From Lepidodermella squamata (lineage: Eukaryota; Animalia; Gastrotricha), in assembly GCA_047495785.1 (NCBI GenBank), contig JBLDXI010000036.1, positions 124,001 through 188,000 on the forward strand: a DNA stretch of 64,000 nt, given 5' to 3'. Each line of letters opens with the position of its first letter. Within the stretch, counting starts at the first letter, position 1. Under the pieces are notes generated by a model that did not search any database, had not been told where the DNA came from, and saw nothing but the letters and a program-made list of their open reading frames with translations. A program made the translations under genes and the position numbers. Positions 9,001 through 40,400 of the stretch are shown piece after piece.

Positions 9001-10276
9001 ATGTTCAAAATGTGATCAGAGCAACATACGAGTCCTACATCGGCCATGCATTTGCCATAGTTAACCGCAAAACTGTTCTCGGAAGCGTAAATTTTGACCT
9101 TGAAAATACAAACAAAATTAACTTGAATTTCGCAAACAAAACTCAAAACGATACCTGTTGCAATCCTTGCGGGCACGATGCGTAGCATACACTTGAAGTG
9201 AGTGATTCGCACTGAACAGCATTCTACAGAAACAGATCGGAAATTTTAGAATTTTATCAGTTAGAAAATTGAAAAATGAACTCACAAATCTCAAGCAATT
9301 TTCTTCAGATATGAAAGCTTCGGGCGAATATATCGAAGTCTCAGCAGGCGCTGGACACTTTTTACGGCAGGCTTTGAAATTTCGCGTCGAGGTATCGAAG
9401 CAGCGATAAACAGGGGCGAGGTCTGGAGCTTGAACTTGAAAAAATCCTAATTAAACGAAATTCAATTTTTGACTGGAAAATTTTACGCCATTTAGTTCGA
9501 CAATCTTCCAAATCATCGAATGTTCGCCCTGGTTTCTGTAATATCGAGATTTGAAACTGAGAAAAATTGACAAATTATTGTTAACCGTCCCGGCCGGGCA
9601 GTCCAATCGCTTCGGCATGCACGTCACCGTGTAACTGCCTTGATGACAGCGTTTGAAATGCTGGCTCTGAATTTGATTTTAATGGCGATAATCTGCTAGT
9701 TCCCATAGCTGGTCTTACCTCAAAATTTTTCAGAGCCACTTCGCAATCCTCGTAATTTTCTCTGAAGAATCTGACACGGTTGAAAACTTTGACCTGGAAA
9801 GAGACATTAATTTTGTGAATTTAATCTATCAAGTGAAATTTGGAAAAAAAATCCCAAATTATTTAGCTGCTCGATTATATCGAAAAATCTAACCTCAACC
9901 TCGCCTTCGCGACAACTCGTGATTCCAAAGCGGCAGATTGGCCTCAATTTTTCGTACAGGTAACAAAGTCTCGCAGCCTAAATGAAAATAATTGCCTAAA
10001 CACTGTTAAATCAATAAAAAAATAATAGAATTAACCCCCTGAGTGCAGACTGTAACATCAGTAAAATTCAGCCCTCGCTGTTAAAACAGATTTTGAAATT
10101 AGAAATTTTAATGCTGAGTAAATCTAAATTACCTGGTACTCATTTAATCGACAACCTGCAGGTAATCTTCGACATCGTTTAAACGAGGCGTCGAACTGTG
10201 AGAAGCACCGTATCCAATTTGTTGCATAAGCAACGGGTACAGCAAAAATCGCAATCAAAATAACGGAGCGTAACAT
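1..10276 (-). CDS. Secreted multi-C-type-lectin protein, paralog A (5' part; continues off the left edge of the window)
   Basis: ATG at 10276 with a signal peptide ([18 protein letters not shown]). Several small Cys-rich exons (ca. 10276-9000) follow. Then come ~510-550 nt exons at ca. 8916-8389, 8336-7821, 7766-7241, 5759-5250, 5197-4664, 4142-3630, 3572-3054, 2087-1557, 1504-971 and 346-<1. Each encodes a 4-Cys module plus a CTLD (C..GQLATIK...AWVGL...WIDG...C...C...AVCE). Colinear with copy B at 59429-46190. Confidence 0.88.
400..915. repeat. Degenerate (TAACCC)-like intronic repeat; similar tracts at ~47570-47870 and ~53730-53820
   Basis: Scattered ccctaac/aaccct units inside introns. 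Confidence 0.6.
5904..6790. mobile_element. TIR element (possibly PIF/Harbinger-like MITE)
   Basis: GGGTGTTTTTTTTTATTC ... GAATAAAAAAAAACACCC termini with GC-rich subterminal repeats. Absent from the matching intron of copy B. Confidence 0.6.
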
Positions 10277-18800: not shown

Positions 18801-21800
18801 TATAGCATTCAGGTGTACCAATCAGCTAATATCATTTAGGCGCTCCTCAGTACCCAGCGCGCACTAATGCCAGAAAAATTAGACACCGAAAGACGCCATG
18901 CAATGACTGCTGGCGGCTATAGCAGATATAGTAATGACTAACCACCTTCAAGCCGCGCAGGGGAATTATGAGGTATTTTCTGGTATTTTTCAGTTTTTTT
19001 GAAAAACCGGTCAAAAACCGGTAGAACGGGCCGTTCCCGGCCCGTTCCGTTCTGGCTTCCACAGTTCGCAGGTCCGGTCTGTGTCTGAAATTCCGGACCT
19101 GTTTCCAACACTGGGTCGAAAAAGTGGCAAATTTCAGACGTCTTTTATGAACGACCGATAACCAAAAGGACTAATATTTACTGGGTAGCAAGTAGCAAAC
19201 GGCCGGCTTCAACTCACGCGTCAAGTCATATGATGACTTGAAATGACTTGAAGTGACTTGATCAAGTCACAGGTGTTGCCAAGTCAAGTCATAGTCAAGT
19301 CAAGTCAAGTCAAGTCCCAGTTACTGATTGTTGAGGAATTCAAACTAATTTCATGAAATTAAGCCCGTTTGGGGAGTCTTTCCAAGATTTTATCCAAGAT
19401 TTTTTCGTAGAAATCCCCAAAAACTCGATGTTAACAATGATTATTGGATTTTTGGGTCAAATATCATAGGATTTTTTTAACCATTAAACCTTGAACATGA
19501 GGCATACTTGAAAAAGAAACGTACTAGCTACCAGCCTTGAAGCATCTTAGATTTTTCTGATTGTCCGTTATATATGACCTCTTCCTCTCATTCTAGAGTT
19601 TCTGAACCCTTTTCTGTTTTTATTTTTATTCGCCCACTTATGTGACACGCTGTATTGGGAAGAAGATGCGTGGTGATTTGAGATTTCAAAGAGATATATC
19701 GCTTATTTAACTCGTCTAATCTGAAACTCAGGAATAAGCCTAAGAAATTGCTTCAACAAACCGGCGTTGTTCGTTTGACGAATGTCTCACAGAGCGAAAA
19801 CCTTTTCTGGTCGCGACAATTGGCGATTCGGACATGGAAATCGGCCGGATGATGGCTTGAGGCGGCAATGAACTCGAGGCTAGAGCATGAGCCATTGCCA
19901 ATCAGCTCCATAAAGCCCCATGGTGTAGGCAGATTGCTGTACAACTCGCGATCTATCCATCGCTTCTCCGAGGCTTTGGTAAGACCTATCCAAGCTGAAG
20001 TCATCGAATTCGCATTGACAACTTTCCGAGCTTGCGCCAATTCAGTGAGAGTCTTGATAGTAGCCAGCTGCCCGTTCCGTAATTGGCACTGACCGTTCGC
20101 GTCATGCCAGCCAGGTTGTTTGCTCAACTCGAGGAGAAAATAGGATTTCATCGCGTTGTTGCATTCTTCAGCACTCGAGAATGAGGTGTCCAAGGGCACT
20201 GTTAACTCATCTCGGAGACAGCCAGCCGGCCATGGTCGACAGGTAACGGCACCGTTAGCTGATCGCGAAACACATCGAGCGTAACCAGTCTGTTAAACAA
20301 ATGGAATAAATCAGTTTTAAACTAAGAGTACTGACAGTCAACTTCTGACATCAATTTCCGACCACGCTCAGCCTCAAGGCAGTGGCATCCAGCAGAAGGG
20401 TGACTCTTCATAATATTTCAAAAGATTCCCTAATTTTAAAAACCTTAGCCAAGGTGGTAAACGCCAAAAGGTTCACGTGGAGGACCCTTTGGTCATGAAA
20501 TTTGGGCCTGAAATAACTCTTAGTTCGAAGATCCTACTTCGCACACTGCTCGAATTCATCCCCATATCGTTTTTGGGTTTACCATCCACTTGGGAATAAT
20601 AACAATATGGACTGGAAAGTAGCGGAAAATTCATCTGATCGAGGCAAAAAATAAAATTTTTGCGAGTGAGGCAAAAAATGTATGAGGGTTTGTAGCAATA
20701 ATAACAAGGCCTCAGCTTAGTCTCCCATTACATTCATTTTTTTCAGGTAGACGAGACCATTAGCGATCTAACTGCTTCTCAGGTGAGGGTTCTATGACAA
20801 TGGGACTTGAATTTTTAGATTCCTCAGCTCACGAGGAATCTTTTGCCTCACTCACAAAAATCTTACTGTTTTGCCTCGATCAGATGAATTTCGTCTCGTG
20901 TAGACATTCCATGACTTCGACTGTCAAGAAGTGTCGAGTCCAGTAGACCTCCTCAGTGTGCGACTTTCAGGGGGATAGTGGTATATCATCACCCCAGCTA
21001 GGCCGGGTCAGACAACAAAATGAGAATTTATCTCAATATTTAATTTGTTGAGTTAATTTTGAGAGATTTTTTAGCTTGTTCTCGTAGAATATCTTCAAAA
21101 GTTTTTCGCTTCGCTCGCTTTATTGTTCAGTGCGCGAAGTAGGATCCTCGAGCTAGGGGGTATTTTCGGGCCCAAATTTTATGACCAAAGGGTTCCCCCT
21201 GTGGTTTTTTGGGGGATTTTCCACTTTGGCCTTGTGAACTGGGGGGTACGATACCCCTCATCCCCCCCCCCCCCCCCCCTCCCCCCGTACTTCGCGCACT
21301 GTTATTGTTAACATGACCAGAACGCTAATCAAGCTGCAGCTTCCCTGCCGGCGGGTCAGCCCACGAAGCAGTTATCGCAGAACGCCAGTGATCAGACACC
21401 CCCCTCGGGACAGAGCTCCTCTGCTGCAGTTGCTACCGAGCCGACAACACAGAACCCTGATCAAGTCGCTGCTGTTGCCAAGAAGCAAGCATCAAAGAAC
21501 GTTGATGCTCAGGTGGCCTCCGCGAGACAAACCTCCACCGCTGCAGCTGCCTCCAAGCAAGCAGAAAATCAGAACCAAGCAGCTACAAGTGGCAAACCGA
21601 CAACGCAGAACGCTGCTGCAGTTGCTAGCAATTCGACTAGCTCAAAGGCAACAATATCAGAATCGGAACCTGTAGAACGTGTCATAGCAGTCGTCGAATA
21701 CACATACACATTTCATCATGAACAAAGGACGGCAACATTCCCGCCACAGTTGGATTACGGCATGCCGTTCCTATTTCTGTATACAGATGTTATTGACGAT

Positions 21801-24800
21801 GTGTATGTCGGGAATACTCGAACGCCCCTGCTGCGTGTAATACCGACAGAAAAAGCGAGTGACAAGAGCAGTTTCTTCTCTAAAACATTTGAAAAGCCCA
21901 TATTTGTTCCGATTAAGCGTCGTGTGTTATCCGTAATTGAAATTCAGATATATAAAGACTCAGGGTTACCTGTAAAATTCGTCAGTGGTAAAGCAGTCAT
22001 CTTAGTGCAAATTAGACCTATAGCTAAATAAAGAATAAATCATGCAATCAGCTGATGCATACGAAGCCTTTTTGTTACAGCAAAGTGGTTATGGCATAGA
22101 ACCTTTTCGCGGCCAGTCCATTGTTTTTCCCACATATCAGGTATGAAAGATGACGAGTACCTACCAAATGAAGCTGTATTGCGTATGTCGTTAATAGACA
22201 GGGAATGGTTTCGGGAGTGTTGCAGCTGGGTTTTTCCGAAACCACATAATTCCGCTTCTCGGCCCCATTTTTCGCAACTTATCCCATACGACGGCGAATA
22301 TTGCAACCGACCTGTTGGAAAACAATAACGCGAATCCAAGGGAAATACTGAAAAAGAGAGCTGTAGAAGGATTGAAAGGAGTTGCCAAAGATGTTATAAC
22401 CAAAGTCGGATCTCAAATCGGGAGCGGCAAGCGTCATCGCCGTCGGCAAAAGAAGAAGCCAGCGGTGAATAGAAAGAAGAAGAAGAGCACGAAGCGGGTC
22501 TATTTTTGAAAAAGTGTATATAAAGGGATGCCGAACACTTGTAGAATAAACATCGATTAGCCATGTACGTCCATCCGTCATCGGAGAATGCCATACGCGC
22601 CGAGCTCAACGTGTTCACGTTAAACCCGACGCAAGTGGAAATAGAGAGTAATTACATTACAGAATACGGGCCAGTGTCAGCAATAGCCAATCAGTCGCGA
22701 ATCGATTTTGACATTCCACCCAGCAATGATTGGACCGATCTCAGTCGCTCGTACGTTGAAATAACGTGCAAAATCACGCACGTTGACACAGCCAAAGCGT
22801 CTGAGGAGATCAAATGTGGCCCAATAAATCTGCTGTTGCACAGTATGTTCAGCCAGGTCGATATGAGCATCAACAATACACAGATTAGCGAACCGGCTCC
22901 GACTTACAACTACAAGGCCTTCATTTCGACCTTACTGAGCTATGATCTAGCTGTAAAAGACAGCTATTTGGCGCTGCAGGGATACTATGCTGACGAGGCT
23001 GGCAAAGTCAGCGATCCTGCGGGAAACGGTCACACAAACCGACTTGCATGGGCCAAAAAAGGCGAAATGGTTCTTATCGGCAAGCCGCATTTAGAGCTAT
23101 TCTCTCAACCAAAATTCCTAATTCCAAACACGCCATTCAAGCTAACGTTTGTGCGAGCATCGGATGCGTTTGTTCTGATGCAAGCTGAGGCTGAAAAAAA
23201 CAAGTACACGTTGACTGTCACCGATGCCAAGCTCAAGCTGCGGCGTGTTCGGGTTTCACCGCAATTCACGCTGGCACTGAACCGCACTCTGACAAAAACA
23301 ACAGCGAAATACGGCGTCAACAGGTCTTTTATAAAGATCCTCAACTTGCAGAAGGGATCCTTAAACTACAACTTGGGACACGTCATACTGGGAAAAATTC
23401 CTAGGCGATTAGTAATGTGCTTTGTAAGCGATAAAGATTTCAAAGGTCATTCGAACAGCAGTCCTTACAATTTCAAAAATCCTGGCGTTCAACGAGTCTC
23501 CGTTACGATTGACAGTGAGCATGTCCCGAATAGTCCCCTGGAAATTGGCGAAAGTGAAAATAATGCTGCCCGGGCATTGAACGCTCTCCGGGAGACAATT
23601 TTTCCCTATTCGAGCAAAACTAACGGAATCAAGCTGTCGGAATATGCCAAGGACGGATTTTCGTTCCTAGGGTTCGACCTGTCACCAGATTCGAGCCGTA
23701 GCGCTTACAGTCTAGTAAAAAGCGGAGTCTTGAACATTGATATTCTACTTAAATCGGCATTGGAAGACAATCTCATTCTATTGTGTTACTTTGAAACCGA
23801 TCAAGTGATCGAATTGAATTTCGCAAGAAACGTTTTGGTGGACTTTACATGAATCTTCAACTGAATACTCTTCAATTGGATTGTCTAATGTCTTGTGACA
23901 AAGTCATTAGTAAACTTGCTGTAAAAAAGACTATTCCCTGGGACTATTTACCGCAATATCAGAAAATGAGCGAGCGACCAATGGCGTTGATAGTAAATAC
24001 CGACGCAGCTGGCCAGCCTGGAAGTCACTGGCTATCAATATACATCCCGCATAAGTTGGAACCAGCGTCGCTATTTGACAGCTATGGACAGCGAGGATTT
24101 TACTACAATGAAGCGATTGAAAATTTTTTGAACGAGATCAACGGGCATGGTTATTACAACTATAATGGGCGAAAATATCAGAGCGAAAACACTGCGGTCT
24201 GTGGCTATTACGCTTATTGGAGCTTACATTGGTTATCTCGCGGCGCAACGCTGGAAAAACTAGCATCGATGTTGAATCAGCAACACGTTTCGGATACGTT
24301 TGTTGTCGAACAAGTGACGAAGCTATTTAAAGTGAGCAAAGCTGAAAACATGTCGCGGTATTTTGGCAACTGTAAGGGACATCAATCATGTCAAGCAATG
24401 TGCCAGCAGAGACTGACTTTTCGCTAAGCTTGGAGGCGCCGTTTTGTTCACTTGTCATCGGTCCTAGCGGCGCAGGAAAGTCATGGCTTATTAGAAAAAT
24501 GTTGAATGATCCTGAATCTATATCCCCGCCACCGAAAGCTATTTTATGGTTCTATGGCGTTGATACAAAAATGCACGCAGAGGTCAAGGAAGAAGTGGAG
24601 AAAAGTCGCGGCATAACGATTGAATTTAGAAAAGGCTTGGAAAATCTCAATTTTGACGAATTTGAATCGAGCGCAAATGCAGGCGATCATACACTGCTCA
24701 TCATAGACGACTTGTATGATACGGGAAGAAATGACCCGAAAATTCATCAACTATTCTATCGCTATTCGCATCACATGCAGTTGTCCGTGTTTTTCACGCA

Positions 24801-27800
24801 ACAAGCAATATTCAGCAAAGGAAAGGTTTCCAAGGAGATGACCTTGAACGCCAAATATTTGTTCATATTCCGCCATCGGGCAGATCTTACAGCATTTCGC
24901 TATCTTGCAATGCAATTGGAACCGTTGCGCTGGCGTTTTCTAGTCGAAAGCTTCGAAATTGAAACTAGTAAAGGCGGCCATCACTACTTGTTAATTGATT
25001 TGAGCCCAAACTGCCCTGAATATATGAGATATAGGACTGGTGTGGGGAGCTATCCGGGAGTTGTTTATGTGCCGAAATGATCCAATAAAATGTATATATA
25101 AATAAGAAGTCTTGTTTCGTAAGTGATCCTGCGAAGTATGCGTAGAAAGCTTGGAAAGTCACACAGGATTTTAGGTTTTGTCAGGGAAATTCTCAGAGCA
25201 AAGACTCACGACAGACGTCGGCAACTGTTATCAATAGCCCCTGATACCGTGATAAAATTAATTTGCGAGATTTGTCTCAACCTCGCCAATAAAAATTTAC
25301 TGATACCGTCAAATCAGGCCAGGAAATTGCGTAAATTTAAAAAATCAATCGAGAAATTGAGCAAAACCGATACGACAGTCAACGGTAATCGGGAATATAT
25401 TGTTCAAAAAGGCGGCGCAGCCTTTGTAGTGCCTCTACTGACAGCCGCAGCTGGTTAGTGTTTTTTGTTTATGACCACCATTTAGCAGCTTTCCAAGCGC
25501 AAATTTAGGTTTACTGCCCACCGTTGTTGAATCGATCATCAAAGCAGCGCGCAAATGATCAAATCAACATCAACATCGGGCCAATACGCTAAGCGGTACA
25601 GTTTGGTGCCTGGGACACTAGTTGACGGATCGAAATCAACCATTGAAACGGAAAGCAAGCGGATAATTAAGGAGGCTTCTGAACCGGCGCAGAAAGGACA
25701 ACTCAAGCGTAACGCAATGCAAATGCTAAATGCGTTATCGGACAACAATGAAGATGACGCTCGCGAAAAGTTGTATAAATTCAACTCGGCTTTTCGCGAC
25801 TTCGAGCGAGCTGTAAGAGAGTTGAAAATTGCCGAATCGATCAAAGCTGAGGAAGATGAGAACGAGGAGGAAGATGAAGATGAGGAAGTGGGAGAAGAAG
25901 AAGATAGTCAGGTCATAAGTCCTAAGGAATCCTCAACGCCTATTTTGCGGAGGGCATCAAAGCTTAGTTTCATCAAAACAAGTCCGAAGCCGGAACAGGT
26001 GAACGGAAACGATGACGGAAATGAGGATGAAATTCCAGTTAAAATACCTAGAGCTGAAAATAAGAAAATTGTACTTGAGAAACTCGCGGATCAGACTATT
26101 ATAGATCATTTCCCAACAGAACAACGTCGAAAAGAAGTAGCGAGGATTTTGAACCATTTGAGGGGACAAGACAAACCGAAAAATGTATTCATTACGGACG
26201 ACAATGCTAAAATTATGCTCATGAACAACACTGGAACCTTGTCAGATTCCTGGGACTTGGTTGATTTTTTGGACAAAGCCACAAACAAGAAGATGAATTT
26301 GAGCGAAACAACACGGGGAAGAATCCGTAATTTTGTACGAGTTGGACAGCTGAACGCGACTAATCCATTAGTTTCCGCATCTCCTCGTGACATCCGAAGC
26401 CGTAATGATACAAAGCAAAAGAAGAATAAGACTCCTCATCCAACAAACAGTCAACCCGGCAAACAGAAGGGAGGTAAATGGCTAGCATGGACTCCTAAAA
26501 TTTCAAATCGACTAAAATTGGACTAAACTTTAACTCGTTATGACTGTTACACATGCTAGCGTTAATGAATTGTGTGGTTTCCGATCCCATTTCTCCGTGA
26601 CCTAAGTAAAGAGACCTTAACATGAAAAAATTAGCCTTTTCGAAGTAATTACTATCATGGCAATGTCCAAAAACATGAACTTTTGGTTTGACTCGGGACA
26701 GAACGTGATTAGTCAAGGCCAGGCAGCCCATTCGATCCCCAGCAAGAGTTTTGTCCAGGATTCCTAACGGAGGGCAATGTGTTACCAGCACATCGGTGTC
26801 GGCTGGAATCATGCGCCATTTTTCATCAATGTCAACGCCCCGATTTCGTGTGAACGCTGAATGCCAGCAGCTGTCCACGGTTGGGGTCCTAACAGTACTG
26901 ATCTCAGTTTTAGGGTTTGATTGTATTAACAAATTTCTTACCAGGGAGAACCGTAAATCTTCACGTCGTCAACCGTGATCGAGTTGTCTTGAAGATAGGT
27001 GCAATTTTTGAAATCATATTGTCGATCTTGTAGACAACGATCGTGGTTTCCGCCGATCGCGATAATTGCTCGAAAGGATGACCTGATTTCGGACAATAGG
27101 TCATCAAACGCTTTCATTTCTTGCACGGTTCCAAATTTAGAAATATCGCCGGCATGAACCAAAACATCAGCAGTCGCGGTGGGTCGTAAGAACGGTAAGA
27201 AGTTCCCATTATGAGTGTCCGACACGCACAGTAGGCGAAGAGACGGCTTTGCACCGTCGAATATGCGACGTGGCTTGTCAAGCTGGTCGAGAGGCTATAA
27301 ATCGTGATATTTTTACAACTCCTCGTTCTAATAGAAGAACCAACTTACTTCAAATGATTTCACTATTCCCCAAGCAAAATTCGGGTGCATCGGTGAAGTA
27401 TAGTTAATCCTCATTGCATAAAATATGCTAAAATAGATTGATACAAGGGAGCGTTAGTGCATCTTTTTAATTGGTCAAAAATCTGCATCGACAGAAAAAG
27501 TGCGATCAGCAAAAGGTTTTGAGCTCATCACACCCATCTTCTGATACTCGCCGACTCGTTTCTCGAAAAAATTGGTCTTTCCATCTAGCGAAATGTTTTC
27601 CATAAAGTCAAAGGGATTCAAAGTATTGAAAACCGTTGGACAATCAAGCTCTACGAGAAGACGATCAGCCACAAACTCAATATACTGATTCATCAGTGTA
27701 CGATTAATACCAATTAGAGCACAAGGTAAAGCATCCACAAGGAATTCTTGCTCAATTAGGACAGCCTCGCGAATTATCTCAGTGATACGCATGACACTAG

Positions 27801-30800
27801 GTCGATTAATCAGATGCCGGAACATAAGACAGGCAAAATCGGTGTGTAAACCCTAGGTTTCGGAGGCAAATGGGATCTAAGACTCGAGAGTGAATAAATC
27901 AACATACCTCGTCGCGGCTAATGAGTTCGTTGCTGAATGTCAACCCTGGCATAAGTCCACGCTTCTTTAGCCAGAATATGGAAGCGAACGATCCGCTAAA
28001 GAAGATGCCTTCGACGGCAGCAAAGGCGACAATTCGTTCGCCAAAAGTAGCAGACTTATCGTCTATCCATCGCAGGGCCCAGTCAGCCTTTCTCCTTACA
28101 CACGGCAAAGTCTCGATAGCATTGAAAAGTAAATCCCTGAATAAATGACTATTTAGAAAGTCAACATTAAGACATAGATTACAAACCGTTCCGAAGGATC
28201 TTTGATGTAAGTGTCTATTAGAAGGCTATACATTTCAGAATGGATGTTCTCAATTGCAATTTGAAGACCATAGAAACATCTCGCTTCAGGAATCTGAACC
28301 TCTTGAGCGAAACTTGCTACGAGGTTCTCATTCACTATTCCATCACTCGCAGCAAAAAACGCGAGGACGCGTGAGATGAAATAGCGTTCGTCAGGCTTCA
28401 ACTTCTCCCAGTCAGTCCGATCATCAGATAAATCAACCTCCTCAGTGGTCCAAAAAGACGCCTCTGCCTTCTTGTACATCTTCCAAATAGCAGGATAGCG
28501 AATAGGTAGAATAACGAAACGCCGAGAGTTCTTTCGAAGCAGTGGCTCATCAAAATCGATGGAGGCGCTCATTATAGATTATGCTAAATCCTCTAAATTT
28601 GTGAAAATCAAAGTTACCACTCAACTGCGGTTTCATTCAAATCGCATTGATCACTCCGATATAAAACTCCAAGCGTGATTTTTCACGACTAAGCCGTCTG
28701 AGATGTGGGTTGGAAAAACGGAGCGACTTGGGCAGGCAGTAATTGCCGTTACTCAATACCAATCTCCCTGGAATAGAGGGCCTGTCAGGCATGCATCCAG
28801 GCCAGTCAAACCAAAGCCAATTCAAGAACTCGCCGACAGTTTCCTCCCTGCTGTTGATTGGCCAAGATACCCTGTCGCCGTTCACCAATATCAAACCTAT
28901 TCGCAGTTGTCGCGAATTGTATGTGTCGCTCGTAACATCGAAAGGTTGCAGCGTCTCATTGCTGCTGGCGAGAGAAGGTGGTGGCGCGTTCATTAAATAT
29001 TGGTATCTCTAAGTCCTCTAAATTGTAAAACAAGACCAAAAAAAACATTCAGGTATAATTTATGGTTTAGGATTTAGGATAGAAACAAATTGCAGTTTCC
29101 GTCTCAGATAGACGATAGATAATAGCGTCGGCTGAACCCGAAGTGAAAACGCAGGCTTTGCATGGGCTGTTGCGGATGAACATTATCTAGGAAATAGAAG
29201 CGTAAGGCGCGATTATTTCGTCGAAACTAACTCACACGTAGGTTCCCGACTTCTCTGATTAATACTTTTGGCTTGAGACCCTTTGGCAATCTGAGTTTCA
29301 ATCTCCACTTTTGTTGCATTTTTCTATCGTCTTAATAATTGATCTAAGATGTAAAACAAGTCAGAAAATTATACTAGTCAGTTATATTTGTTCCGGCATT
29401 CCTTGACTTGGATAACTTCAAAATCAATGCATTCCAGTTCGACTGCTCCTGAACCCCAATATCCTGCAAGAATCCCCTATTTTAATTAATTTTTTTTTGT
29501 CATGTGAATTTATCACTTGGCAAGAAAATTACTTATAGGAGCAAAGTTGCGCTTCAACGGTAAGCCTTTGTGGAGCAGGCGAAGGTTCATGATATGCGGC
29601 TTCAATCCCCAGCTTTCAGGCCATTCGTAGTACAATTGGTAGATAATGTCCTGTACCGTGTGGGATTCGGAACAGTGCATTATGATCTGGTCTCCGTTCC
29701 GCCAATTAAGCTTGACTATAAATCCAGTATTAGGTGATCCGCTCGCTGAACCTTTCATTTTTCAATTCCTAAAAATAACAGAAAGAAAGAACGATTAATT
29801 AACAGCATTTTACTTGCGGAGACGATCAGGAAGATAATCGGATTGAAGCTTTACTAAATAAGTACATATTTTCATATTTGGGCTTGGAATACGACGACTC
29901 AATCCTGGAAATTAGAGAATTTTAGCGAAGCACGTCTATAGGTTTCATCCAGTTTTTGAACAACTAACCTTTCATCAAAACCGTTTTTCGAACTGGGCGT
30001 CCTTTGCATTGTAGTTTCAATTGCAGAAAATCAGGCTTTGGCCCCCAATTTGACGGCCATGCAGCCTGCATCTCTTTGACGCAATCAGCGATAGTCGCAG
30101 ATTCGCCGAAAGATGAGCAATAGGATGAGCCGTCCGCAAGTACAATCCGACAAACGTAAGCCATCATTTAAGAAACCTAAACTAAAAATAAAAATAAAAA
30201 CGATATTAAATATGCACATTTACTATTTACAATTGTACATCAAATTTTTGTGGTATTCAGGGAAAAGTCGCATCGGAATTTGGAGAGGGTAGAAAGGTGC
30301 ATTTACAGTTCAACTTGACCTTCTTAGGTATCTCCGGTCTCTTGTCACATTGAGTCTGATGTAGCAACACGTTGGAATACTCCAGTTTAGCTGAACAGCC
30401 GTACTTTTCAAAGGCGCAAGTGAATTTCAGGCGTGCGATCAATCGTTCAACAACTCCAGGCCCTGGAACAAGGTCGATGCACATGAAGTCAGCTCGGCAT
30501 ATCGGACATGAAGCTGGCGTGAAAATGTTGACTCGGTATTGCCCGCGACAACATCGATCCCCCCATCGACAAATGCAAAGCTCGCAAAACACGTGCTGAC
30601 AGCCGACTATGTATACTGGAGAATTCATCACTCCAAGACAAATGCTGCAGGTAATTTCCTTTTCAATGAATTCGAACTGAGTTTTGAATTCAGGTGCAAC
30701 TTGTTCGGGCGGAACGCTGTCTGAGTTTTTTTCTAACATCTAAGGAAGAGGATAGGTTGTAAATTTAGACATGTAGCCATATGGGACAGAGGTGAAGGTT

Positions 30801-33800
30801 TTAGGATCAAAAACGCGCTTGTCATTGAGATGCGGGGAAACTCGCTTATCAAGTTTTTCCAAGCTGACCGATGCCGGGACATGTCGCCTGCGGAACATTG
30901 ATTGTTCTATTGACATGCAAGCCCCAGTTGATGATTCATTCAAGTAATTGAGTAGCAGATCTACCAAAGACTCGTGCGACATTGCTGTCCCTGCCACGCT
31001 TTGGCTGATGCCTTTGAACTTGAGTTCCGTCCTGAAATTTGACCTGAAAAGTAGTAACTAGGCTACGCTATATATTGAATTTCTAACCTGAGATTTGTGA
31101 CGAATGAATATGATTTTGGTGATATACAAACCCAGGATTTAATGTACTCCCCATCCTCTAGCTCTGATTTATACTGCCCAAGATATGGCCCATTCGGTAT
31201 TCTATACTCGCCTTCACGATATGTGTATATCAAGGAATCGGCTGGAAAAAAGTGAAAGATTTTTCGCTGAATTTTCAAGTTCTCGGCAACTTACTATCGC
31301 AGTATACCAGCCGGGAACCCAGCCGAGACATCTGCGAATTTTACGTGTAGCATTTGCGTAATTTTAGCGTAAGTTGAGCCTGCTTACCTCTTCGTAGAGC
31401 AAAATCCGTGCGTAAGATGTAATGAAGGAAGCTATTATTTCCGAATTTGTCGCGCAAATTTGTTCGTAATCCGGAGCGTCTGAATACGACACTCGGACTG
31501 TCTGAAACTCGTCATCAGGTCCTACAGGCTGGATTGAATGGACGATCTTGTTCGGTGATTCTAGTAACTCAATCAATTGAGTTGGCGAACTGAGATAAAC
31601 GACTGTTGAGTTGGAGCCTTTGAGGCAGAAGCGGCCATAGAAACTGGCATCCCAAGCTTGGTAAGAGGTAAATATGGTCAATTCGAGAACTTACCTATTT
31701 TGCAATGTCTTGGAAATCTGTCGGATAGCTGGATTAGGAGATTGGAGTGCTTGCCGGTCGAGATCTATTGCATACCTTTCACGGCATTCAGACATGTACT
31801 GTTCCAAATCTATCGTCGGGTCTAGTTTTGTGTGTTCCAGCTTAAGTTTCTGCAACGAGATGATGAATTCTTTGAACTGAAGATTGCTCTTCTTCTCAAA
31901 CTCCCAAATCTCGTAAATTTCAAGCAGTTGATAGCCGTATCTGGAAACAGCCATTCTTAGTTCTTCGCTAGTCCAAACCGAAGTTATAGCGCGTTGATCT
32001 AGGTTATGATTGCACGGTGCGGATCTATTCTTCTCCAAGTAACAAGATTTACAAGAAATAAAAACTAGCCTTGAATCATCCGGTGATTTCCATGGCAAAC
32101 ATGGAATTAAAAGTTCGGGATTCGGAGCGACTTTTGCCGACACGAGACCGAACGAGGGTTGAGTTGGATGAAAGAACCTGGCCCTGAGCTTGGAATCGTT
32201 TAGCCGCCACCTTAAAACACGAGGTGAGACATCGCCGCAAGGAAATAATTGCGTATATAAAATGTATGGATACATGGAGTTAATATCAGCATATAACAAG
32301 CTGGTCTCTGAATCTTTTTCGAAAAAGCACCGAAAATTTTCGCACCTTCCACCCTGTTGTTATATAATTTCCGGAAAATTTAATAAGGTTAAGGCGGCTA
32401 GATAGGGCTTACCATTAGTGCGGATCTTGGTTTTATCGGAGGAACTACATTAACTACTTGTTGCAAAGCTCTATCTATATCCGGGTTTTCAGCTAGAAAT
32501 GCGTTGAATTCGCAAGAATAAATGGACGTAAGCTGATATCCGCTCTGCCTAATTTTCGCTTCCCTCGCTGCAGTCTCATGTGCTAGCTGGCCGAACGTCT
32601 TTCTCAATAGGGCATTAAACTTGTTTTCTTGACAACAAGTAGGATGTCCATGTATGGTACAACCTATTGCGATTCACAAGCTATATTAGTTCAAGTAGAA
32701 GGGTTGGCCGCACTTACCGTGATATTCGAGGACGTGTTCAACTTTGCCAGTGGCGTTGTTTTTGATAACACCGTCCGCTTTTATCACCGATTTATCATGC
32801 ATGACTATCCGGCATTCAGATCCGTTGAGCGCTGATTCAATTTCTACGTTGTGGGTTTTGCTGTAGTAGAGAAGCCATTTAAGGCTCTCTTGACTTGATA
32901 TATCCTTTAGCGCAAGTCCTGTTGGGCTGATGATAGAAATCGTTTTCGGCTGCATGTACTTTATCTGCGCATGTAAAACTGGAGATTTTCCTGTAATTTT
33001 TCTAACAGTAAGACTTACGCGGTATATTATATGCGAAATTGAAGAGAGCGTTAAATAATGAAAACAATTTATCCCGTTTGGAGCATAATCGCAAATCGAA
33101 AGCTTGGTGATTAGTTTTTTGAATCTGCCCGTCGCGATTCGCAATATAACCACATCTTGAACGCAGTATGTATAAGTCTCATTTTTCACGATGTATTGTG
33201 CTTGGAGAGAGCGTTTTTGACTAATGAAATCTTTCAACTTTGATATTTCGCGCTGCGACATGTTGCTGGTATCATAGCTTTCAATCCCAGGCCAAATCGT
33301 GAATGTTTTTGTTAAATTTTCGCGATTATGTAGCTTATGAGGATACGTTAGCTTTTCGATACCGTCGATCCCAAATGCAGCGGGGAGATTGGCTAATTTA
33401 GTCTGGAAATAATTGAAGCTGTCGATAAATCTTAAATTGGACTCATTTTCACATGTGGACTGCTTCTAGGTTGGAAAATGTTACCTAGGACCGCCTTTGA
33501 TTTTAAGCTCAAGTATCCTCCCTGCCCTCTCTATTGTAGTAAACTTCAAGTTCTGGTCCTGTACGTATCGCAGTACAAATATTGTGTCGAATTTCCCTAT
33601 TAAAAAGAATTATCAAATAAAAAAATTGAATTAAATCGTCATAAATTTTGCGCGATGAAAGTTATTACCTCCATAATGCGAAATGCAGGTGAGGCTTCTG
33701 AATTCATCGCGGCAAATGAATTCCATGAACTCAGCCATTGCACGAGTCTCATGATAAAAGAACAGTTGGCTACAACCGTTCTTGCAAATTGGAGTGCCGT

Positions 33801-36800
33801 TTTCAGGGTAGCGCCGAATTTCACGGTCACAGCACTCATTGCATGCGAACTCGCCAACGACGGTAGTCGGATAGAACTCGCCGTTTTCTATTAGAACGCA
33901 TTCGAGATCGAAGTATAGGACTTTCCCGGGCTCAGGTGTTGTTTTCAATTTAGGTTTTGACCAATAGCATCGATGACCGGGTTCTAGTAAGGTTTTGCAG
34001 ACTACGCATTTACGGCCGGGGCAGTTATGTTTCAGCAATTTATTGCGGGTCTTGACTTCGCCGCAACCTCGACATCGGACATACTTATCACAAATCTTAG
34101 ACTGAACATGCGATTCATAGCACTGCGCGCCGAAAAAGAACCGATTGCATCTAGAACAACATACGCTCGCGGCGTCGGAGCAGCGGTTTAACCTTTTCGG
34201 TCTAATTATAGTCCCACTCCCAGTCTTTTCAGCCGATGAAGGATTGACCCTTTGATAGCACGCATAGCAGCGGAAACTACAGTTATGGATAGTCCGGGAT
34301 ATAGGAATGAAGCATAATTTGCAATACCTCTTGCCTTGGCTGATTTGATAAAGATTTTTGAGCACTGCGAAATGACCTAGGCTGCTATATACCGCGCCTG
34401 GTAACTTGGAACTAAACCAAACCAAGTATATTTTCCGCGCTTCTTGGTCGTGAAATGCTGAGCTATCTGGCCATGTGAAGATCACCCTATCGTCTATCAA
34501 AGAGTAAACTAAAACTTGATATCCAGGGTATAAGGGCATGATTTTAGTCAGATCGGCCACGCTATAGCAGCGATTTGCATCTGGGTTGAATCCTGATTTA
34601 ATGCACAGTTCTCTAGCTAGCTTGCGCTGTAATGTCATGTCATCTTTCAATCGCAGAAATTCCATTCCGACCTTTTCCATCTCAGGGCATTCTAGGTAAC
34701 GCAAAAGATTCGAATTTTTATCAACCACGTACCTAGCATAAGTTTCATAGCTAACAGCGAGAACTACTGCGTAAAATAGGCAAAGCTGATCCCCGTTATT
34801 GTTCACAGGAATGTAAGAGCTGAGGTTCGATACCCATTTCAACGCGTTTGTCTCAATTTTTTTCTTGTGATCTATGCCCGCACCTACGTATTCGCTGGGA
34901 TTTTTCTTCAGTTTATCTAGGAATACCAAGTTAGCCTCTACGCGCCATGGATTACTAGATATTTTGAGACTCTGGCGACTTTGCGCAACACGTTCTATAT
35001 GACTCGTGATAGTGTTGGTCGTCATTGAAGCAAGCCTAATATATCCCAAAGAAATAGGATAAGCTAAATCTGAATTATACAGGGTTAATCGAGCCATGGT
35101 AGATGGATCGAATTTCGACTGTAAATTAGCTACAATTTTATCAAAAAATTCCTGAATGCGAGAGTATTGAAGTAAAACGTCGCCATCTGACTCGCCAAGT
35201 CCTGTTTGAATCCTAAACTCGTATGTTGATAGACCGTACTTTTTGCTAACGCACTCGTGCTGCAATACCTCGAATTCGGCACTCATCATGTAATTCTAAC
35301 TGAAAGTTCTGAAAGTTGATTATAAATTCGAAAATTAGATTGTTGGATTGGCGAAAACATTGGTGACAAAACAAGGAGCTTTGGTTAAAACAAAGCTCCG
35401 GCTGATACAGGAACCGGTGTAAAAAAAAGCAACTCCAGGGTCTCTCTGCTTTGATATAATAACCTAAATGGAAGGACAAAATTGTTATTGATTATAGTTT
35501 AATGATATAGTTGATTAATAGTAGGGACAGACTTTTTTTTTTTTCTTTTTAGATTACTATATTAGGTCATATGATAAGTGTAGGTCTAACGATAGGGTAA
35601 GATGTAGCGATTATTGGTGATTTAAACTTTTTCGTAACCTGATTTTTTTTTCTCCCCTATCCACCTTAACTTTCTTTAAATTTTCTGATTTTTGCGTTAC
35701 ACTAGTCGTGTCCTTTGAAAACTAGGTCACTGGTCTTGGAATATTTTACCGATTACAGATTACACTATATTACTGAATACTAAATTGTTCAGGTCACGAA
35801 AAAATTGAGAGATAAGACAAGTTATAGGAAGTTAATTTGTGAAGTTAGGGCGGAGTTTTCCGGCATTCTTTTGACACGATTGACGAGATCTTTCAAGCTG
35901 TATCAGTCACCTGCCTCAAAACAGTGTCGAAGACCCAGAAGAGCGACTGAGGGATTGAAATGCCGTCTTTCAGTGGTTTGAATTGATTTTCTTCTACCGA
36001 TTTGAATCTTCGAATGTCGACGTAGAAAGTTCGTCTGTTTGATGGGGAAAATATAGACCAACGTAGATCATTGAAAATTGGGCTACTATTGCCGCCAGCC
36101 GCAGGGTCCTTGTTTTCTACGGCGGCCAGTGCGTTTTCAATATCGATTACCCACGGAGCCTCGTTCTCGATATCAGCTAGCAATCTACGACACTCTTCGA
36201 ACGTGATATAAAGTCCCTTGTCAATCGAGGAAAATCGATTGTGGAAATCGGGAATGGCTGTTTTGCCGAGAAATATCACGTATCCGCCATCTTCAGCCAG
36301 ATATCGAATAGCCTTGAACGTTTTGGATGATTTAAAATTGAAGACTCGATCGACTATTTTAGCCTTTGATGCCAGGCTCGAGTTGTAAGGTATCAAATCG
36401 TTGTGTCTCTGTGCCATTTTTAAGATGATAATATAACAAATTTTAAATTATATTTCTCAGAATAATATTTTGCGATTTTTCTTTCTCAATATTAGGATTT
36501 TAACTTAACGCAGACATATGGCCGTGATTTTTACGTACTGTAAACGTAGTTATTTTCGCGTTATTTTTGAATTCGCGGCCGATCGATTTCGACATTTTGC
36601 CTTTGATCGGCGGCAAATTTGACTTTGAACCGCCGTCAACACGAAAATTACTGCGTTTATAGTATTGGTAATACTCATAATTTGTAGTTCATGGGCGGTA
36701 GGATAATCGGCCTAACAGCTGATTATTCGGGCTCAGGCTCTGCTGATAACCTGAGTAACGAGCTATAGGACGATTTTCCTTGATATCGCCTGTTCATTAT

Positions 36801-37453
36801 GTAGTCCGGCTGTGTGTTTGCCGGCTGTGCGTTGCGCAATTCTGTGATAATCGGTATTAACGCTAAATACGCTTGCGCAACTCGTCTCAAATAACACGAC
36901 TGCCTCAACACATATTATTCCGAGCGAGGAGGCTAGCGCTTTTACGTACTCAACCGGCACGACAAACCGCGCGCATTAGTTATAACTAACAATTATACAG
37001 GGTGTCCGCAATGTATTAAGCATTTAGCTTTAGCTCATGGCAATTAGCACGTACTAAGCTAAACTTAGTTGTGTACTTGTTATTTATTTATAAGCTTTCA
37101 CGCCCAAAAGAGGGCGGCTTGACAAGAGGTAATTTGAAAGTGAAAAATGTAATTATTTCGTGGACACCTTGTATTTAGCGTTAATTGAGACATTAACAAG
37201 CGAATTTCGCTAATCGGTGATTCGATAAAATAAATATCGATAACTTCGATATTACCTCTTGGAGTTTTGCGGATTTTTGAACAACTTGTGGCTTCGGTTG
37301 TTGTTCGGTTGCTGCTGCTGGCTGTGTTTTGTCCAGAACTCGGTCATATTTACGCTGATTCATGGCGCGTGAAAGCTATGGGGATTTTAGTGAGAATTTT
37401 CGAACGAGTTTCCACCCCAAGTTCGCTCGCCTTTTATACCCCTCTCGCGATAT

Positions 37454-37488
<35 letters not shown>

Positions 37489-40400
37489 TTCATTTATTTA
37501 TTCATTTATTTATTTATCTTCATTTGCAACGTTCTATTCCTGTTTAGCTCTTCTAATCCTCTTCTGGACAACGGTGTCCTGAGATTATCGGGTCACTCGA
37601 TAATTCCTAATTCTTATTTCTTCGACATTTTTGACACTCCTTTGGTTTCGAGATTTGTTCAAATTCCTATTTGTTCGGCTTTTTTGACACTCCCTTTGGT
37701 TTTGAGATTTGTTCAATCTCCTGTTGAATCCTTCTTCCAATGCCCTTCTCGACGACCTCGCTGGTTGGTGATTGTTTGACAGTGCTAATCGTCTTTAAAT
37801 TATTTCCTCGGGTCTGTCGATAATTCCTAATTACTATTTGTTTGAAATTGTTGACGCTCATTTTGGTTTTGAGATTTGTTCTATCCTCGTTGGTTGGCGC
37901 ATTTTTGACAGTGCTAATCGTCTTGAGATTATTTCCTATTTCTTCGGCATTTTGAGAAGTGTTCAGTCCATGACAATTGAATCCTTGATTAGCCGATCTG
38001 ATTAGCCGCGAGCGGACGCGCGCAACTTATAGATAATGATGTGATTAGTTCTTATCCGCTCGATTGGCAGATGCCCATTTGCTCCTTGTCAGGTCGCCTT
38101 ATATAAGGACTCGTATTACTACTCTTAAGTGTAATCATTTCTTACGCATTAAGTTATACTACGTTTTTCTGTTGAATTATTTTCATTAAACATAATGCCG
38201 ACCAAGTCAACTGCCTATAAATTAAAGCGTGTGTCGCGACCTCGCAATGTCATCGCTACCCGCGTGCTGCGAGTTCAGCGCTCGAACCGCAAGTCGATCC
38301 GCAGTTGTTATTCAAGTCTAGAATCTCGGTCATTTGATGATGTCCCTCCTTCGCGTCCTACGTCACGAATCGACGCCCCGCCGCCGACCATCGATGCGTA
38401 TATTTCCGAGATCAAAAGGAAACCGGTGGTTCGCATCCTGTCGATAAGATCGTTGGCTAGTCTCGGTCTCTACAACTCAAACAATTTCGATGTCAACACC
38501 TTCGAGTGTAACCACCTCGACTACACCTCCACTGCTCCAACTCAGACTCCTCCTCAGTCGCTTATATTCGAGCCTGTTGCCTCCGACGTCGACCTCAGCT
38601 GCGAGTGTTGCCTTGCCAAGTTCGAGCCTACAATTTTCATCGAAAACGAACAGCTCGCCTGCGACTATTTATGTTGATGTTTCACGATCATACCCTGCAT
38701 TTTATTTTTCAAATAAATTTTTGTCCGTTTTATTCAACGCTTTTTTTTTTATTCATCTCAGTGTGTAATAGTTGAGTCAAGACTTGTTTCGCTCCTGTTT
38801 TTTTTTTTGTATCCTATTCGTTGTCGATTCGTACCTGTTTCGTCCTGAGCTATCATCCGCGGAGATTGATTTTTTTTCTTCAGTTATTAGGAAAAGAAGG
38901 GAAAGGAAAGGAAAGGAAAGGAAAGGAAAGGAAAGGAAAGGAAAGGAAAGGACAGGAATGGATAGGTAAGGAAAGGAATGGAGATTAGGATTGTGGTATC
39001 CAACTTAAAAAATGATATTATAAAGGTCAAGGTCGACCTTGTCTTCGTTTTAATTTTTATCTGCGGTATCGAATCCTCCTCTTATCCCACTGGTTCGCCG
39101 TATTAGGGCCCTGAAGCAGTGTGCGAAGTAAGAACCGGGGGTTGAGGTGCTTTTTACTTGTTATCTAGGACCCAGCCGTAGAAACCAAAGGGTCCCCCAG
39201 TGGTTTTTTCAGCCTTCCTCTGAATGTAGTCCTAGAGCTGGGTTGTCGCGACATCCCAGCATCCCGGTACTTCGCACACTGCCCCGAAGCTTTCTATTCA
39301 AAAACGATAATAAAATCTCAGTTTCACGGTACTTATCAACGATTACGAGTTATGCCATTACATTTATGAAAATATTTTTTCTGGAATTTAAACTTTGATT
39401 TTTTACGCCCTGGCACAATCAACAACTTTCGATCATCGGGATTTTTTTAGCTACTTTTCGAATATCTCGACGACCTTGTGAAGGCCTTGGGATGATGAGC
39501 CTGGTATCGTGGAAAGAGCGCAAAAAGTTGTCCCAGGACACAAATTATCAATAAATTACAAAAATGACGTTTTTCAGAATATCGATTGGAAAATGGGTCG
39601 ATTTTACATGCGTTTAGCTATGCCCACAAGGCTCAAATAAAACGCACAAAAACGTGGCGCTGCACATGGTGACCTTTGCACCCTAACATTCTGACACTAT
39701 GGCAGGATCGTAAGCTTCCGATATTTATTATTATCTATGGTACCCCCCCCCCACCCTCCCCCCACCCCCTCTTCCCGTTCAGCAAGCCAAAGTGGAAAAC
39801 CCCCAAAAAACCACAGGGGGGCCCTTTGGTCATAAAATTAGAGCCAGAAAATACCCTCTACCCTCTACTCAGAGGGTCCTACTTTGCGCACTGTTACGCA
39901 AGGAGAAGCGTAGAAGAGCTCTGGGAGAAGGTTCGACACATCGACCGTTTGAATTTTATACGTAAATACCAATATCTCTAGATCGTAAATATGCTGTTTA
40001 GTCTTTTTGATAAGAATTATGAATCATGACATCCCGGGATTTGGTTTTAACATAATGAAAACTCACGTGTGGGTTGAATGTCTCGCAAATAGCGCTTTTC
40101 GACTTGGCATCGCAAAAGTGGTCGTTCAAATAGAAATTCGTTGCGTAACCATCGCGACCTGAATATTGAGTATACTCCGCGCATTTGTCATTGCCCGGCT
40201 CGCCTGGCCCCCACTGCTGGTTCAGCGCCGTGAAATTTGAGCCATCAATCCAGTAGTAAGCACCTGAGAACTTGCTCAAGCCAGTCCAGCCAGACGGGAA
40301 CCCTGAAGCTGCTAGGGCTGATCGAACGTCTTCCTGTTCTTGCGAAGTTTTAACAGTAGCAAGCTGCCCAGAATTCGCCAAACAGAGGTCCCTAGCTTCA

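Follow-up and report, generated by a model that had tools for sequence, protein, structure and literature searches.

A RING gene and three anchor-less UBL3-like genes in a putative endogenous Maverick element of the gastrotrich Lepidodermella squamata

Why would an animal genome carry, directly behind a gene for a protein-primed family B DNA polymerase (pPolB), a RING gene followed by three small genes resembling the ubiquitin-like protein UBL3 (MUB)? This question is raised by a locus of Lepidodermella squamata, which was analysed here within a 64-kb window, i.e., the whole stretch of DNA under consideration. The original prediction, made from the sequence alone, held that a Polinton-like virus had captured, triplicated and de-anchored a host UBL3 gene and had paired it with an E3 of its own. 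All features of this cassette are present on the minus strand, at the coordinates given below. They are best explained as the cargo of a Maverick/Polinton (adintovirus-like) element that is endogenous to the animal genome, an explanation which, taken jointly with all its parts, we regard as plausible at somewhat less than an even chance.

The first gene of the cassette (30257..30739, minus strand) begins with an ATG that directly abuts the pPolB stop codon and encodes a protein of 160 aa, with a C3HC4 RING (residues 31-82) and a putative TRAF/Sina-type zinc finger (residues ~100-146). All eight zinc ligands are readable, and the protein is recognized by the Pfam models zf-RING_UBOX (28 bits, cut-off 25.2) and zf-C3HC4 (23.7 bits, cut-off 21). 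A phmmer search of the PDB recovers the RING domains of TRIM30, TRIM5, BRCA1 and TRAF6 with E-values from 2e-6, matches which belong to E2-binding RINGs, with the TRAF6 alignment covering the RING and the first finger. The Sina_ZnF match is weak (22.5 bits as against a cut-off of 32), the Cys-Cys-His-Cys spacing of the finger after the RING fits by eye, and a word-based homologue search returned no close homologue of the protein. The anticipated RING and zinc-finger gene behind pPolB is thus real on the evidence of Pfam and phmmer, and its product is a predicted RING-type E3 ubiquitin ligase.

The three small genes follow on the same strand. Copy 1 comprises a first exon that holds 66 codons and ends one base into the next, split codon (29969..30167), a 64-nt phase-1 intron with GT-AG borders (29905..29968) and a second exon of 31 codons and a stop (29810..29904). 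Copy 2 has the same organization, with a UBL3-like first exon (29533..29758), a 69-nt GT-AG intron, likewise of phase 1 (29464..29532), and a second exon of 27 codons and a stop (29378..29463). On splicing, both stay in frame and yield proteins of 97 and 103 aa, respectively. Copy 3 is a single intronless ORF of 118 aa (28637..28993) with a weaker resemblance to UBL3, in which about 26 probably disordered N-terminal residues precede a predicted β-grasp body. An alignment of the three copies displays invariant Gly, Thr, Trp-Pro, Pro and Gly columns. As had been read from the translations, copies 1 and 2 have both the WPxxW motif and the L(R/K)L..KG strand, and copy 3 has the WP only. In copy 1, exon 2 supplies a β5-like hydrophobic strand, an Arg-x-Pro-Ser at the would-be lap-bar loop and a basic, Cys-less end; in copy 2, it supplies a β5-like strand and a single Cys at position -6 from the end, with no CAAX. 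Between copies 2 and 3 there is a possible additional two-exon small ORF of uncertain status (29067..29319, minus strand), which the original prediction missed. Its first 14 residues resemble the β1-turn of UBL3 without significance, and it gave no signal against the aligned UBL3 rows.

Several lines of sequence comparison converge on UBL3 in the case of copies 1 and 2, which recognize each other in BLASTP with an E-value of 5e-13. With exon 1 alone, the single Pfam match of each is PF13881, at 19.0 bits (E 1.6e-3) for copy 1 and 18.6 bits (E 2.1e-3) for copy 2, scores which, unlike those of cellular members, fall under the gathering cut-off of 23. When a profile built from the three copies is run against the PDB, the UBL3 structures 1wgh and 2gow come out on top; run against 1.84e9 representative sequences, this profile retrieves four CAAX-type PF13881 proteins with E-values of 1e-4 to 9e-4. 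All four have Cys-rich ends, and one is a schistosomatid UBL3, so named by its sources. Three Cna_B or saposin repeat proteins, which took the highest or similar ranks in the same profile search with E-values in this range, were set aside as repeat-driven. In the reciprocal direction, tblastn of named UBL3 proteins, among them schistosome ones, against the six-frame translation of the window finds copies 1 and 2 only: exon 1 of copy 1 is matched by P0008-P0011, and exon 1 of copy 2 by P0002, P0005, P0007 and P0008. In BLASTP, exon 1 of copy 1 aligns gaplessly with the schistosomatid UBL3 (P0007) at 30% identity over 56 aa, and exon 1 of copy 2 with P0005 at 42% over 36 aa. Finally, hhalign against the UBL3 rows gives 96% for copy 1, 97% for copy 2 and 72% for copy 3, the rows having been picked in part by the window's own profile, which makes the E-values of this comparison optimistic. 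Single-sequence phmmer searches of each copy against the PDB returned nothing relevant, a word-based homologue search with exon 1 of copy 2 found nothing, and the exon-2 peptides of copies 1 and 2, taken alone, have no significant similarity to the UBL3 rows. The proposed assignment of copies 1 and 2 to the UBL3/MUB family is thereby upheld, and we consider it very likely that both descend from an intron-bearing cellular UBL3 gene.

The same assignment is less firm for copy 3, which has no match in Pfam, the PDB or BLASTP, and stands on its hhalign score, with 70 columns in register with the UBL3 rows, and on its predicted structure. AlphaFold models it with a core pLDDT of 72-87 when the UBL3 rows are included in the alignment, as opposed to a pLDDT of 49.7, too uncertain for use, when the three rows from the window are supplied alone. 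The former model has a β-β-α-β-(β)-α-β order of elements; Foldseek places only ubiquitin or ubiquitin-like chains among its top matches, and of these Arabidopsis MUB3 in complex with an E2 (4x57) has the highest TM-score. The β-grasp fold that had been expected of copy 3 is therefore predicted with the UBL3 rows and is of low confidence without them, i.e., the model hinges on their presence. Copy 3 is accordingly treated as a probable UBL3-like protein, and its descent from an intron-bearing cellular UBL3 gene is likewise the better bet, at a lesser confidence than for the other two.

A pointer to the source of these genes comes from their intron. Copies 1 and 2 share, as originally noticed, an intron of phase 1 that lies in the 11th codon following the conserved Gly, and intron 2 of the UBL3 gene of Heterobilharzia, a schistosomatid and the one animal lineage compared, has an identical position and phase. 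The fungal and metagenomic UBL3 members are intronless. This match in position and phase argues for the capture of an intron-bearing cellular gene. In this respect, the copies retain one of the three UBL3 introns (none in copy 3), and they further resemble the cellular family in their putative β-grasp body, the Trp-Pro(-x-x-Trp) loop that follows helix 1, the conserved glycines in the β1-β2 turn and in the L-x-L-x-x-x-G strand, and the absence of a di-Gly end. They differ from it in being present as three tandem, highly divergent copies within a virus-like element, and in what has happened to their C-termini.

The predicted loss of the membrane anchor is confirmed: none of the three copies has a CAAX box (in spliced or unspliced models), a pair of cysteines or a di-Gly at the end, whereas cellular UBL3 has a C-terminal Cys-Cys/CAAX tail. 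A scan for C-x-x-x-stop signatures of hidden CAAX exons found only out-of-frame mini-ORFs, arising from a repeated spacer motif and lacking a splice path to the genes. With the tail lost, neither prenylation nor the modification of UBL3 that depends on C-terminal cysteines is possible. A second feature of cellular UBL3/MUB, the lap-bar loop (K/R)-x-Pro-Phe-Gly that connects helix 2 to strand 5, is likewise not conserved: copy 1 has Arg-Ile-Pro-Ser at this site, like the Lys-Leu-Pro-Ser of the schistosome UBL3, and a similar stretch is absent from copies 2 and 3. In MUBs the Pro-Phe of the lap-bar mediates E2 inhibition (PMC4996978), and its absence weakens a reading of the copies as E2 inhibitors.

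The setting of the cassette bears on whether these genes belong to a mobile element at all. The pPolB gene (30740..35289, minus strand) matches Pfam DNA_pol_B_2 (PF03175) in two collinear pieces; its reading frame is split into seven ORF pieces by six interruptions, and the N-terminal ORF of 552 aa has no match in Pfam or the PDB. Polymerases of this class are known to bear an OTU domain at the N-terminus (PMC8502044, PMC11071308); the OTU-like look of the N-terminus here is a reading by eye, which has the class literature as its one footing. Beyond the UBL3-like genes lie a ribonucleotide reductase small subunit (27475..28572, minus strand; PF00268), whose three exons, separated by two GT-AG introns of ~55 nt, collinearly match profile positions 1-116, 124-193 and 213-281, and a calcineurin-like metallophosphoesterase with short introns (26495..27414, minus strand, start read manually; Pfam Metallophos and Metallophos_2). 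The RING and UBL3-like genes are thus placed between pPolB and a candidate capsid/ATPase module on the plus strand. This module comprises a P-loop packaging-type ATPase (24388..25080), with weak matches to Adeno_IVa2 (E 4.5e-4) and AAA_22, and three ORFs of 172, 429 and 192 aa (21513..24427), which by position, gene order and eye only are penton-like, major-capsid-like and adenain-like candidates. Neither Pfam nor the PDB yielded a match for these three candidates, and PDB searches with the protease and ATPase ORFs gave nothing useful. Genes for a fusogen, protease or kinase were not seen among the cargo, and Rfam and tRNA scans of the 64-kb window were empty.

An alternative reading of this gene order would have the RING, UBL3-like, reductase and phosphatase genes as a host array lying between two Maverick fragments. 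The host-like short introns (54-69 nt) and the acceptor-like sites before the ATGs, unlike anything in the plus-strand capsid genes, fit such an array, as does the undefined position of the element's ends. Against this, pPolB and the RING gene adjoin each other stop to start, all seven cargo genes lie on the pPolB (minus) strand with spacers of 0-89 nt, C-type lectin arrays, the true host neighbours, flank the element on either side, and intron-bearing cargo regions are documented for nematode Mavericks (bioRxiv 10.1101/2022.07.12.499685). A host array appears highly unlikely to us, as compared with cargo of a Maverick. As a separate observation, a TTAG occurs within 30 nt upstream of the ATG in 7/7 cargo genes, against a background of 8-12%, an enrichment that hints at co-expression.

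A second alternative accepts the genes as cargo and regards the host-derived RING and UBL3-like genes as neutral passengers in a dead endogenous element. The scanned ORFs of at least 60 aa between 20.2 and 40 kb gave no rve integrase match. Terminal inverted repeats with a target-site duplication were not detected either: all long inverted pairs stem from MITEs inserted separately, of which two are complete, each with its own 8-bp duplication, and others are partial. A 97%-complementary inverted pair of 65 nt (21128-21192 and 41296-41360) was considered as the element's termini and rejected, because each arm sits within a complete MITE of ~150-175 nt with its own 8-bp duplication. In the absence of a detectable integrase or terminal repeats, the element may be dead, to which may be added the six interruptions of the polymerase frame and the lack of cassette relatives in the protein libraries. 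The last point is weak evidence, since annotation seldom covers small genes located in repeats. Further, the paralogues are less than 30% identical to each other and nevertheless keep their ORFs, GT-AG splice sites and UBL3 core columns intact, as the neighbouring reductase and phosphatase genes also do. Such divergent and yet intact paralogues would point to long-term maintenance, which is counted in favour of functional cargo, and we consider neutral passengers unlikely. These same observations qualify the capture scenario of the original prediction: the shared intron supports the uptake of a host UBL3 gene, whereas the captor appears as an endogenous element with an interrupted pPolB frame and undetected integrase and terminal repeats rather than as a virus.

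If the cassette is indeed maintained cargo, how does it compare with known precedents? Host-derived ubiquitin-fold genes are found in viruses, e.g., the baculovirus v-ubi, the ubiquitins of giant viruses and the ubiquitin inserts of pestiviruses; such genes encode ubiquitin itself or generic UBLs, often conjugatable, unlike the copies considered here. The best structural matches in a viral library are virus-encoded ubiquitin or ubiquitin-like genes, and the match list contains no UBL3 type from a Polinton-class element. Comparable in context are nematode Mavericks, the cargo of which includes WASP proteases and KRMA kinases with ubiquitin-like domains (bioRxiv 10.1101/2022.07.12.499685). They share with the present element the presence of ubiquitin-fold modules in an intron-bearing, modular and fast-evolving cargo region; however, theirs are N-terminal domains fused to the protease or kinase and not assigned to UBL3, as opposed to the stand-alone UBL3-family genes adjoining a RING E3. 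Polinton-class (MELD) viruses carry an OTU-fold domain on pPolB and, occasionally, accessory genes that are TRAF-like or UCH-like (PMC8502044, PMC11071308). The RING with its TRAF-type finger fits this ubiquitin-system theme, but the pairing of a RING E3 with UBL3-derived genes is not listed there (PMC8502044, PMC11071308). In agreement with the earlier statement that UBL3 homologs had not been described in this virus group, our literature search found no work that pairs UBL3 with Polintons or Mavericks.

The combination of a RING gene with three anchor-less UBL3 genes suggests that the element tampers with the host ubiquitin machinery. Cellular UBL3/MUB binds the backside of E2s (PMC4996978), and the three proteins could be soluble β-grasp bodies that still dock non-covalently on the backside of UBE2D-type E2s. 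They would be expressed together with the element's RING E3; a splice-acceptor-like site lies just before the ATG of each gene. The copies might then feed or tune the E2 used by this RING, or else compete with the membrane-tethered UBL3 of the host for the same E2s; either option would shift host ubiquitination in favour of the element. Binding of the E2 without blocking its charging by E1 would be likelier than MUB-style inhibition, as the Pro-Phe core of the lap-bar is missing. As a mechanism taken whole, soluble E2-binding modulators working with the element's RING are a tentative proposal, about which we lean to the doubtful side. The wider notion of a kit, in which an OTU-fold domain on the polymerase, the RING E3 and the three soluble, anchor-less UBL3 paralogues act on host E2s, is somewhat unlikely.

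A different target can be envisaged. UBL3 assists MARCH1 as a cofactor and acts in sorting to small extracellular vesicles (PMC9001657, PMC6158211), and both roles need its C-terminal end: the MARCH1 function requires prenylation (PMC9001657), and the modification of UBL3 and vesicle sorting require its C-terminal cysteines (PMC6158211). A UBL3 body missing this tail therefore has the shape of a classical competitor, and the soluble copies could bind MARCH-type (RING-CH) ligases or vesicle-sorting partners, thereby blocking UBL3-dependent receptor turnover or the loading of extracellular vesicles. Yet the cited sources define no direct contact surface between UBL3 and MARCH1, the sequences carry nothing specific for such a role, and the adjoining E3 is a soluble TRAF-like RING rather than a RING-CH ligase. 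We rate this competitor role as decidedly unlikely, and return to E2-binding modulators as the preferred function of the cargo.

The shared intron neatly illustrates the uptake, by a Maverick, of a host gene in its genomic, intron-bearing form, and the capture bears on the role of Mavericks as carriers of host genes between genomes. UBL3/MUB is a conserved and poorly understood branch of the ubiquitin system, and to our knowledge its known activities all depend on the lipid anchor or the C-terminal cysteines. If the notion of a kit acting on host E2s were true, the genes described here would be the first virus-borne UBL3 family and a natural separation of the E2-binding body of UBL3 from its lipid and cysteine tail. 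UBL3 would join the short list of ubiquitin-system parts borrowed by viruses, and three tail-less UBL3 bodies kept beside the element's own RING ligase would reveal the activity of the ubiquitin-fold body alone.

The window is animal DNA, in which C-type lectin exon arrays lie on both flanks of a Maverick/Polinton-type element at about 21.3-36.4 kb, and which elsewhere contains further C-type lectin exons and one Cys-loop receptor exon. On its plus strand the element has a P-loop ATPase that weakly matches Adeno_IVa2, along with a candidate capsid module; the minus strand encodes a protein-primed family B polymerase (pPolB; PF03175). Seven small genes, arranged head to tail, lie downstream of the polymerase: a RING gene, three ubiquitin-like genes, a small ORF of uncertain status, the small subunit of ribonucleotide reductase and a metallophosphoesterase. 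The ORFs scanned yielded no integrase, and terminal inverted repeats of the element were likewise not found. A 65-nt inverted pair was rejected as terminal repeats, since its arms belong to a MITE family (~150-175 nt, short inverted ends) with its own 8-bp target duplications. Complete MITE copies at 21128-21301 and 41210-41360 (duplications at 21120-21127/21302-21309 and 41202-41209/41361-41368) and partial copies near 20459-20548 and 39774-39892 flank the element on either side, mimicking its terminal repeats.

The polymerase reading frame has six interruptions, which may be introns because the adjoining genes have short true introns. Its N-terminal 552-aa ORF (33631-35289, minus strand) contains Cys and His motifs that, judged by eye, resemble OTU and precede a Cys-rich stretch, and it has no match in Pfam or PDB. 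Beside the polymerase, ~4.5 kb without a recognisable gene (35300-39770) contain simple repeats, four ~81-nt repeats at 37585-37939 and an ORF of 174 aa that faintly matches PC4, and may represent a decayed element end. Additionally, a segmentally duplicated C-type lectin block of ~11 kb (1-11323 and 46186-60478, ~49 kb apart, 81-99% identity) brackets the element, with more diverged lectin paralogues at 15.8-20.2 kb and 40.0-43.6 kb.

All the features described in the original prediction were recovered in place. The RING and zinc-finger gene that it had put behind pPolB (30739-30257, minus) shows the complete set of eight C3HC4 ligands, scores above the cut-offs of two Pfam RING models and aligns with the RING domains of TRIM, BRCA1 and TRAF6; its match to the Sina zinc finger model is weak. 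On the same strand follow the three small UBL3-like genes, copy 1 (30167-29810), copy 2 (29758-29378) and copy 3 (28993-28637), and, as further cargo, an intact-looking reductase (27475-28572), whose three exons are collinear with the Pfam profile, and a calcineurin-like phosphoesterase (26495-27414). The introns of these last two genes are ~55 nt, with GT-AG borders in the reductase. A possible extra two-exon ORF between copies 2 and 3 (29067-29319, minus) begins with a stretch resembling the first strand and turn of UBL3, without statistical support, and could be a degenerate fourth unit. One rival explanation holds that a host gene cluster was trapped between element fragments; against it stand the zero spacer between the polymerase stop codon and the RING ATG, and the lectin arrays that are the host neighbours on both sides. 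In 7/7 cargo genes (26400-30740, minus), the 30 nt before the ATG include a pyrimidine-rich TTAG, as against 8-12% of minus-strand ATGs overall; the plus-strand capsid genes lack it. These sites look like acceptors for a shared or trans-spliced leader.

The claim that all three small genes are UBL3/MUB-like stands for copies 1 and 2 and becomes probable for copy 3. At E-values up to 1, copies 1 and 2 match a single Pfam family, PF13881 (UBL3/MUB domain), with scores below the gathering cut-off because exon 1 holds just half the domain, the exons having been searched one by one. When a profile of the three copies is run on 177,635 PDB sequences, UBL3 structures from mouse and human come first, at E-values of only 0.06-0.08. 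Run on 1.84 billion representatives, the profile brings up four PF13881 proteins (E 1e-4 to 9e-4), all with CAAX-type C termini rich in Cys. One is a schistosomatid protein, to whose relatives the sources give the name Ubiquitin-like protein 3. Three repeat proteins that scored alongside were set aside, their rank being best accounted for by scores summed over repeats. Since the UBL3 comparison rows were partly picked by the window's own profile, a six-frame reverse search of the 64-kb window was run with four schistosome UBL3 proteins not so selected: copy 1 was matched by 4/4 and copy 2 by 1/4, with no other match at E up to 1. Judged from sequence, copies 1 and 2 thus belong to the UBL3/MUB family.

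Copy 3, a single ORF of 118 codons, has no BLASTP match to UBL3 or to its neighbours; hhalign aligns it with the UBL3 rows at 72% probability over 70 columns in the correct register. The AlphaFold model built with UBL3 rows in the alignment has a core pLDDT of 72-87 and the order beta-beta-alpha-beta-(beta)-alpha-beta. Every chain among its top PDB matches listed is ubiquitin or ubiquitin-like, and of these Arabidopsis MUB3, taken from its E2 complex, has the best query TM-score; a model from the three window rows alone is unreliable. Copy 3 is hence probably UBL3-derived.

The shared motif columns that had been named are invariant in the three-way alignment, with copy 3 keeping just the WP of WPxxW. 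Copies 1 and 2 have paralogous first exons (27% identity across 60 residues, E 5e-13), both of which end, as predicted, at a canonical phase-1 donor within the 11th codon past the conserved Gly. The introns (64 and 69 nt) have canonical acceptors and agree in size with those of the neighbouring reductase, and the frames run on to stops, giving predicted products of 97 and 103 residues. In the cellular UBL3 gene of Heterobilharzia americana, mapped from its protein as four coding exons, intron 2 occupies the same position and phase, with an alignment free of gaps from the Gly to the intron. A chance coincidence has a likelihood of roughly one in a hundred (three introns, ~330 possible positions and phases), in a comparison confined to one lineage, since family members from fungi and metagenomes have no introns; the remaining two Heterobilharzia introns are absent from the window copies. 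The shared intron speaks for the proposed capture of a cellular UBL3 gene from genomic DNA, intron included, and likewise for the second exons of copies 1 and 2 being real; these exons show no detectable similarity when searched alone and are placed on strand 5 by MAFFT.

The predicted lack of a CAAX prenylation box was borne out: no copy ends in Cys-a-a-X, paired cysteines or di-Gly, spacers to the next genes are just 51-73 nt, and a scan of the cassette strand for C-x-x-x-stop gave nothing but mini-ORFs that are out of frame and lack a plausible splice path. Two spacers (29344-29358 and 29018-29032, minus) share an 11-nt motif, one frame of which encodes the CAAX-like Cys-Phe-Thr-(Ser/Ile)-stop; the motif is not in frame with the genes before it, has no usable acceptor and is probably a coincidence.

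Nematode Mavericks are known to have cargo regions with introns and also ubiquitin-like domains; in contrast to the present genes, these domains are N-terminal parts of proteases and kinases (bioRxiv 10.1101/2022.07.12.499685). In Polinton-class viruses the polymerase bears an OTU-fold domain, and TRAF-like and UCH-like genes occur now and then (PMC8502044, PMC11071308). Ubiquitin genes are common in baculoviruses and giant viruses. A literature search found UBL3 paired with neither Polinton nor Maverick, in keeping with the original statement that such homologs are undescribed in this virus group.

A predicted RING E3 and three tail-less UBL3-type genes thus sit within the cargo region. They might be neutral cargo of a dead element, in which neither integrase nor terminal repeats were detected; against this, the genes have diverged deeply and yet all have open frames and unbroken splice sites, which argues for long maintenance under selection. 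The array would be expressed through a leader spliced, in cis or trans, onto each ORF. UBL3/MUB proteins dock non-covalently on the E2 backside, and the lap-bar loop motif, (K/R)-x-Pro-Phe-Gly, lets MUBs block E1 charging of E2 (PMC4996978). This motif is not conserved in any copy; copy 1 has an Arg-x-Pro-Ser stretch, as in schistosome proteins, and copies 2 and 3 have nothing comparable. A rival reading is that the soluble copies compete at UBL3 partners other than E2. On the E2 reading, which we put forward tentatively and at less than even confidence, the tail-less proteins would retain backside docking. Membrane tethering and cysteine-linked modification are needed for the known cellular roles of UBL3 (PMC9001657, PMC6158211), and the tail-less copies would be neither tethered nor able to make such modifications; together with the element's RING they would hence, as soluble proteins, modulate UBE2D-type E2s or compete for them.
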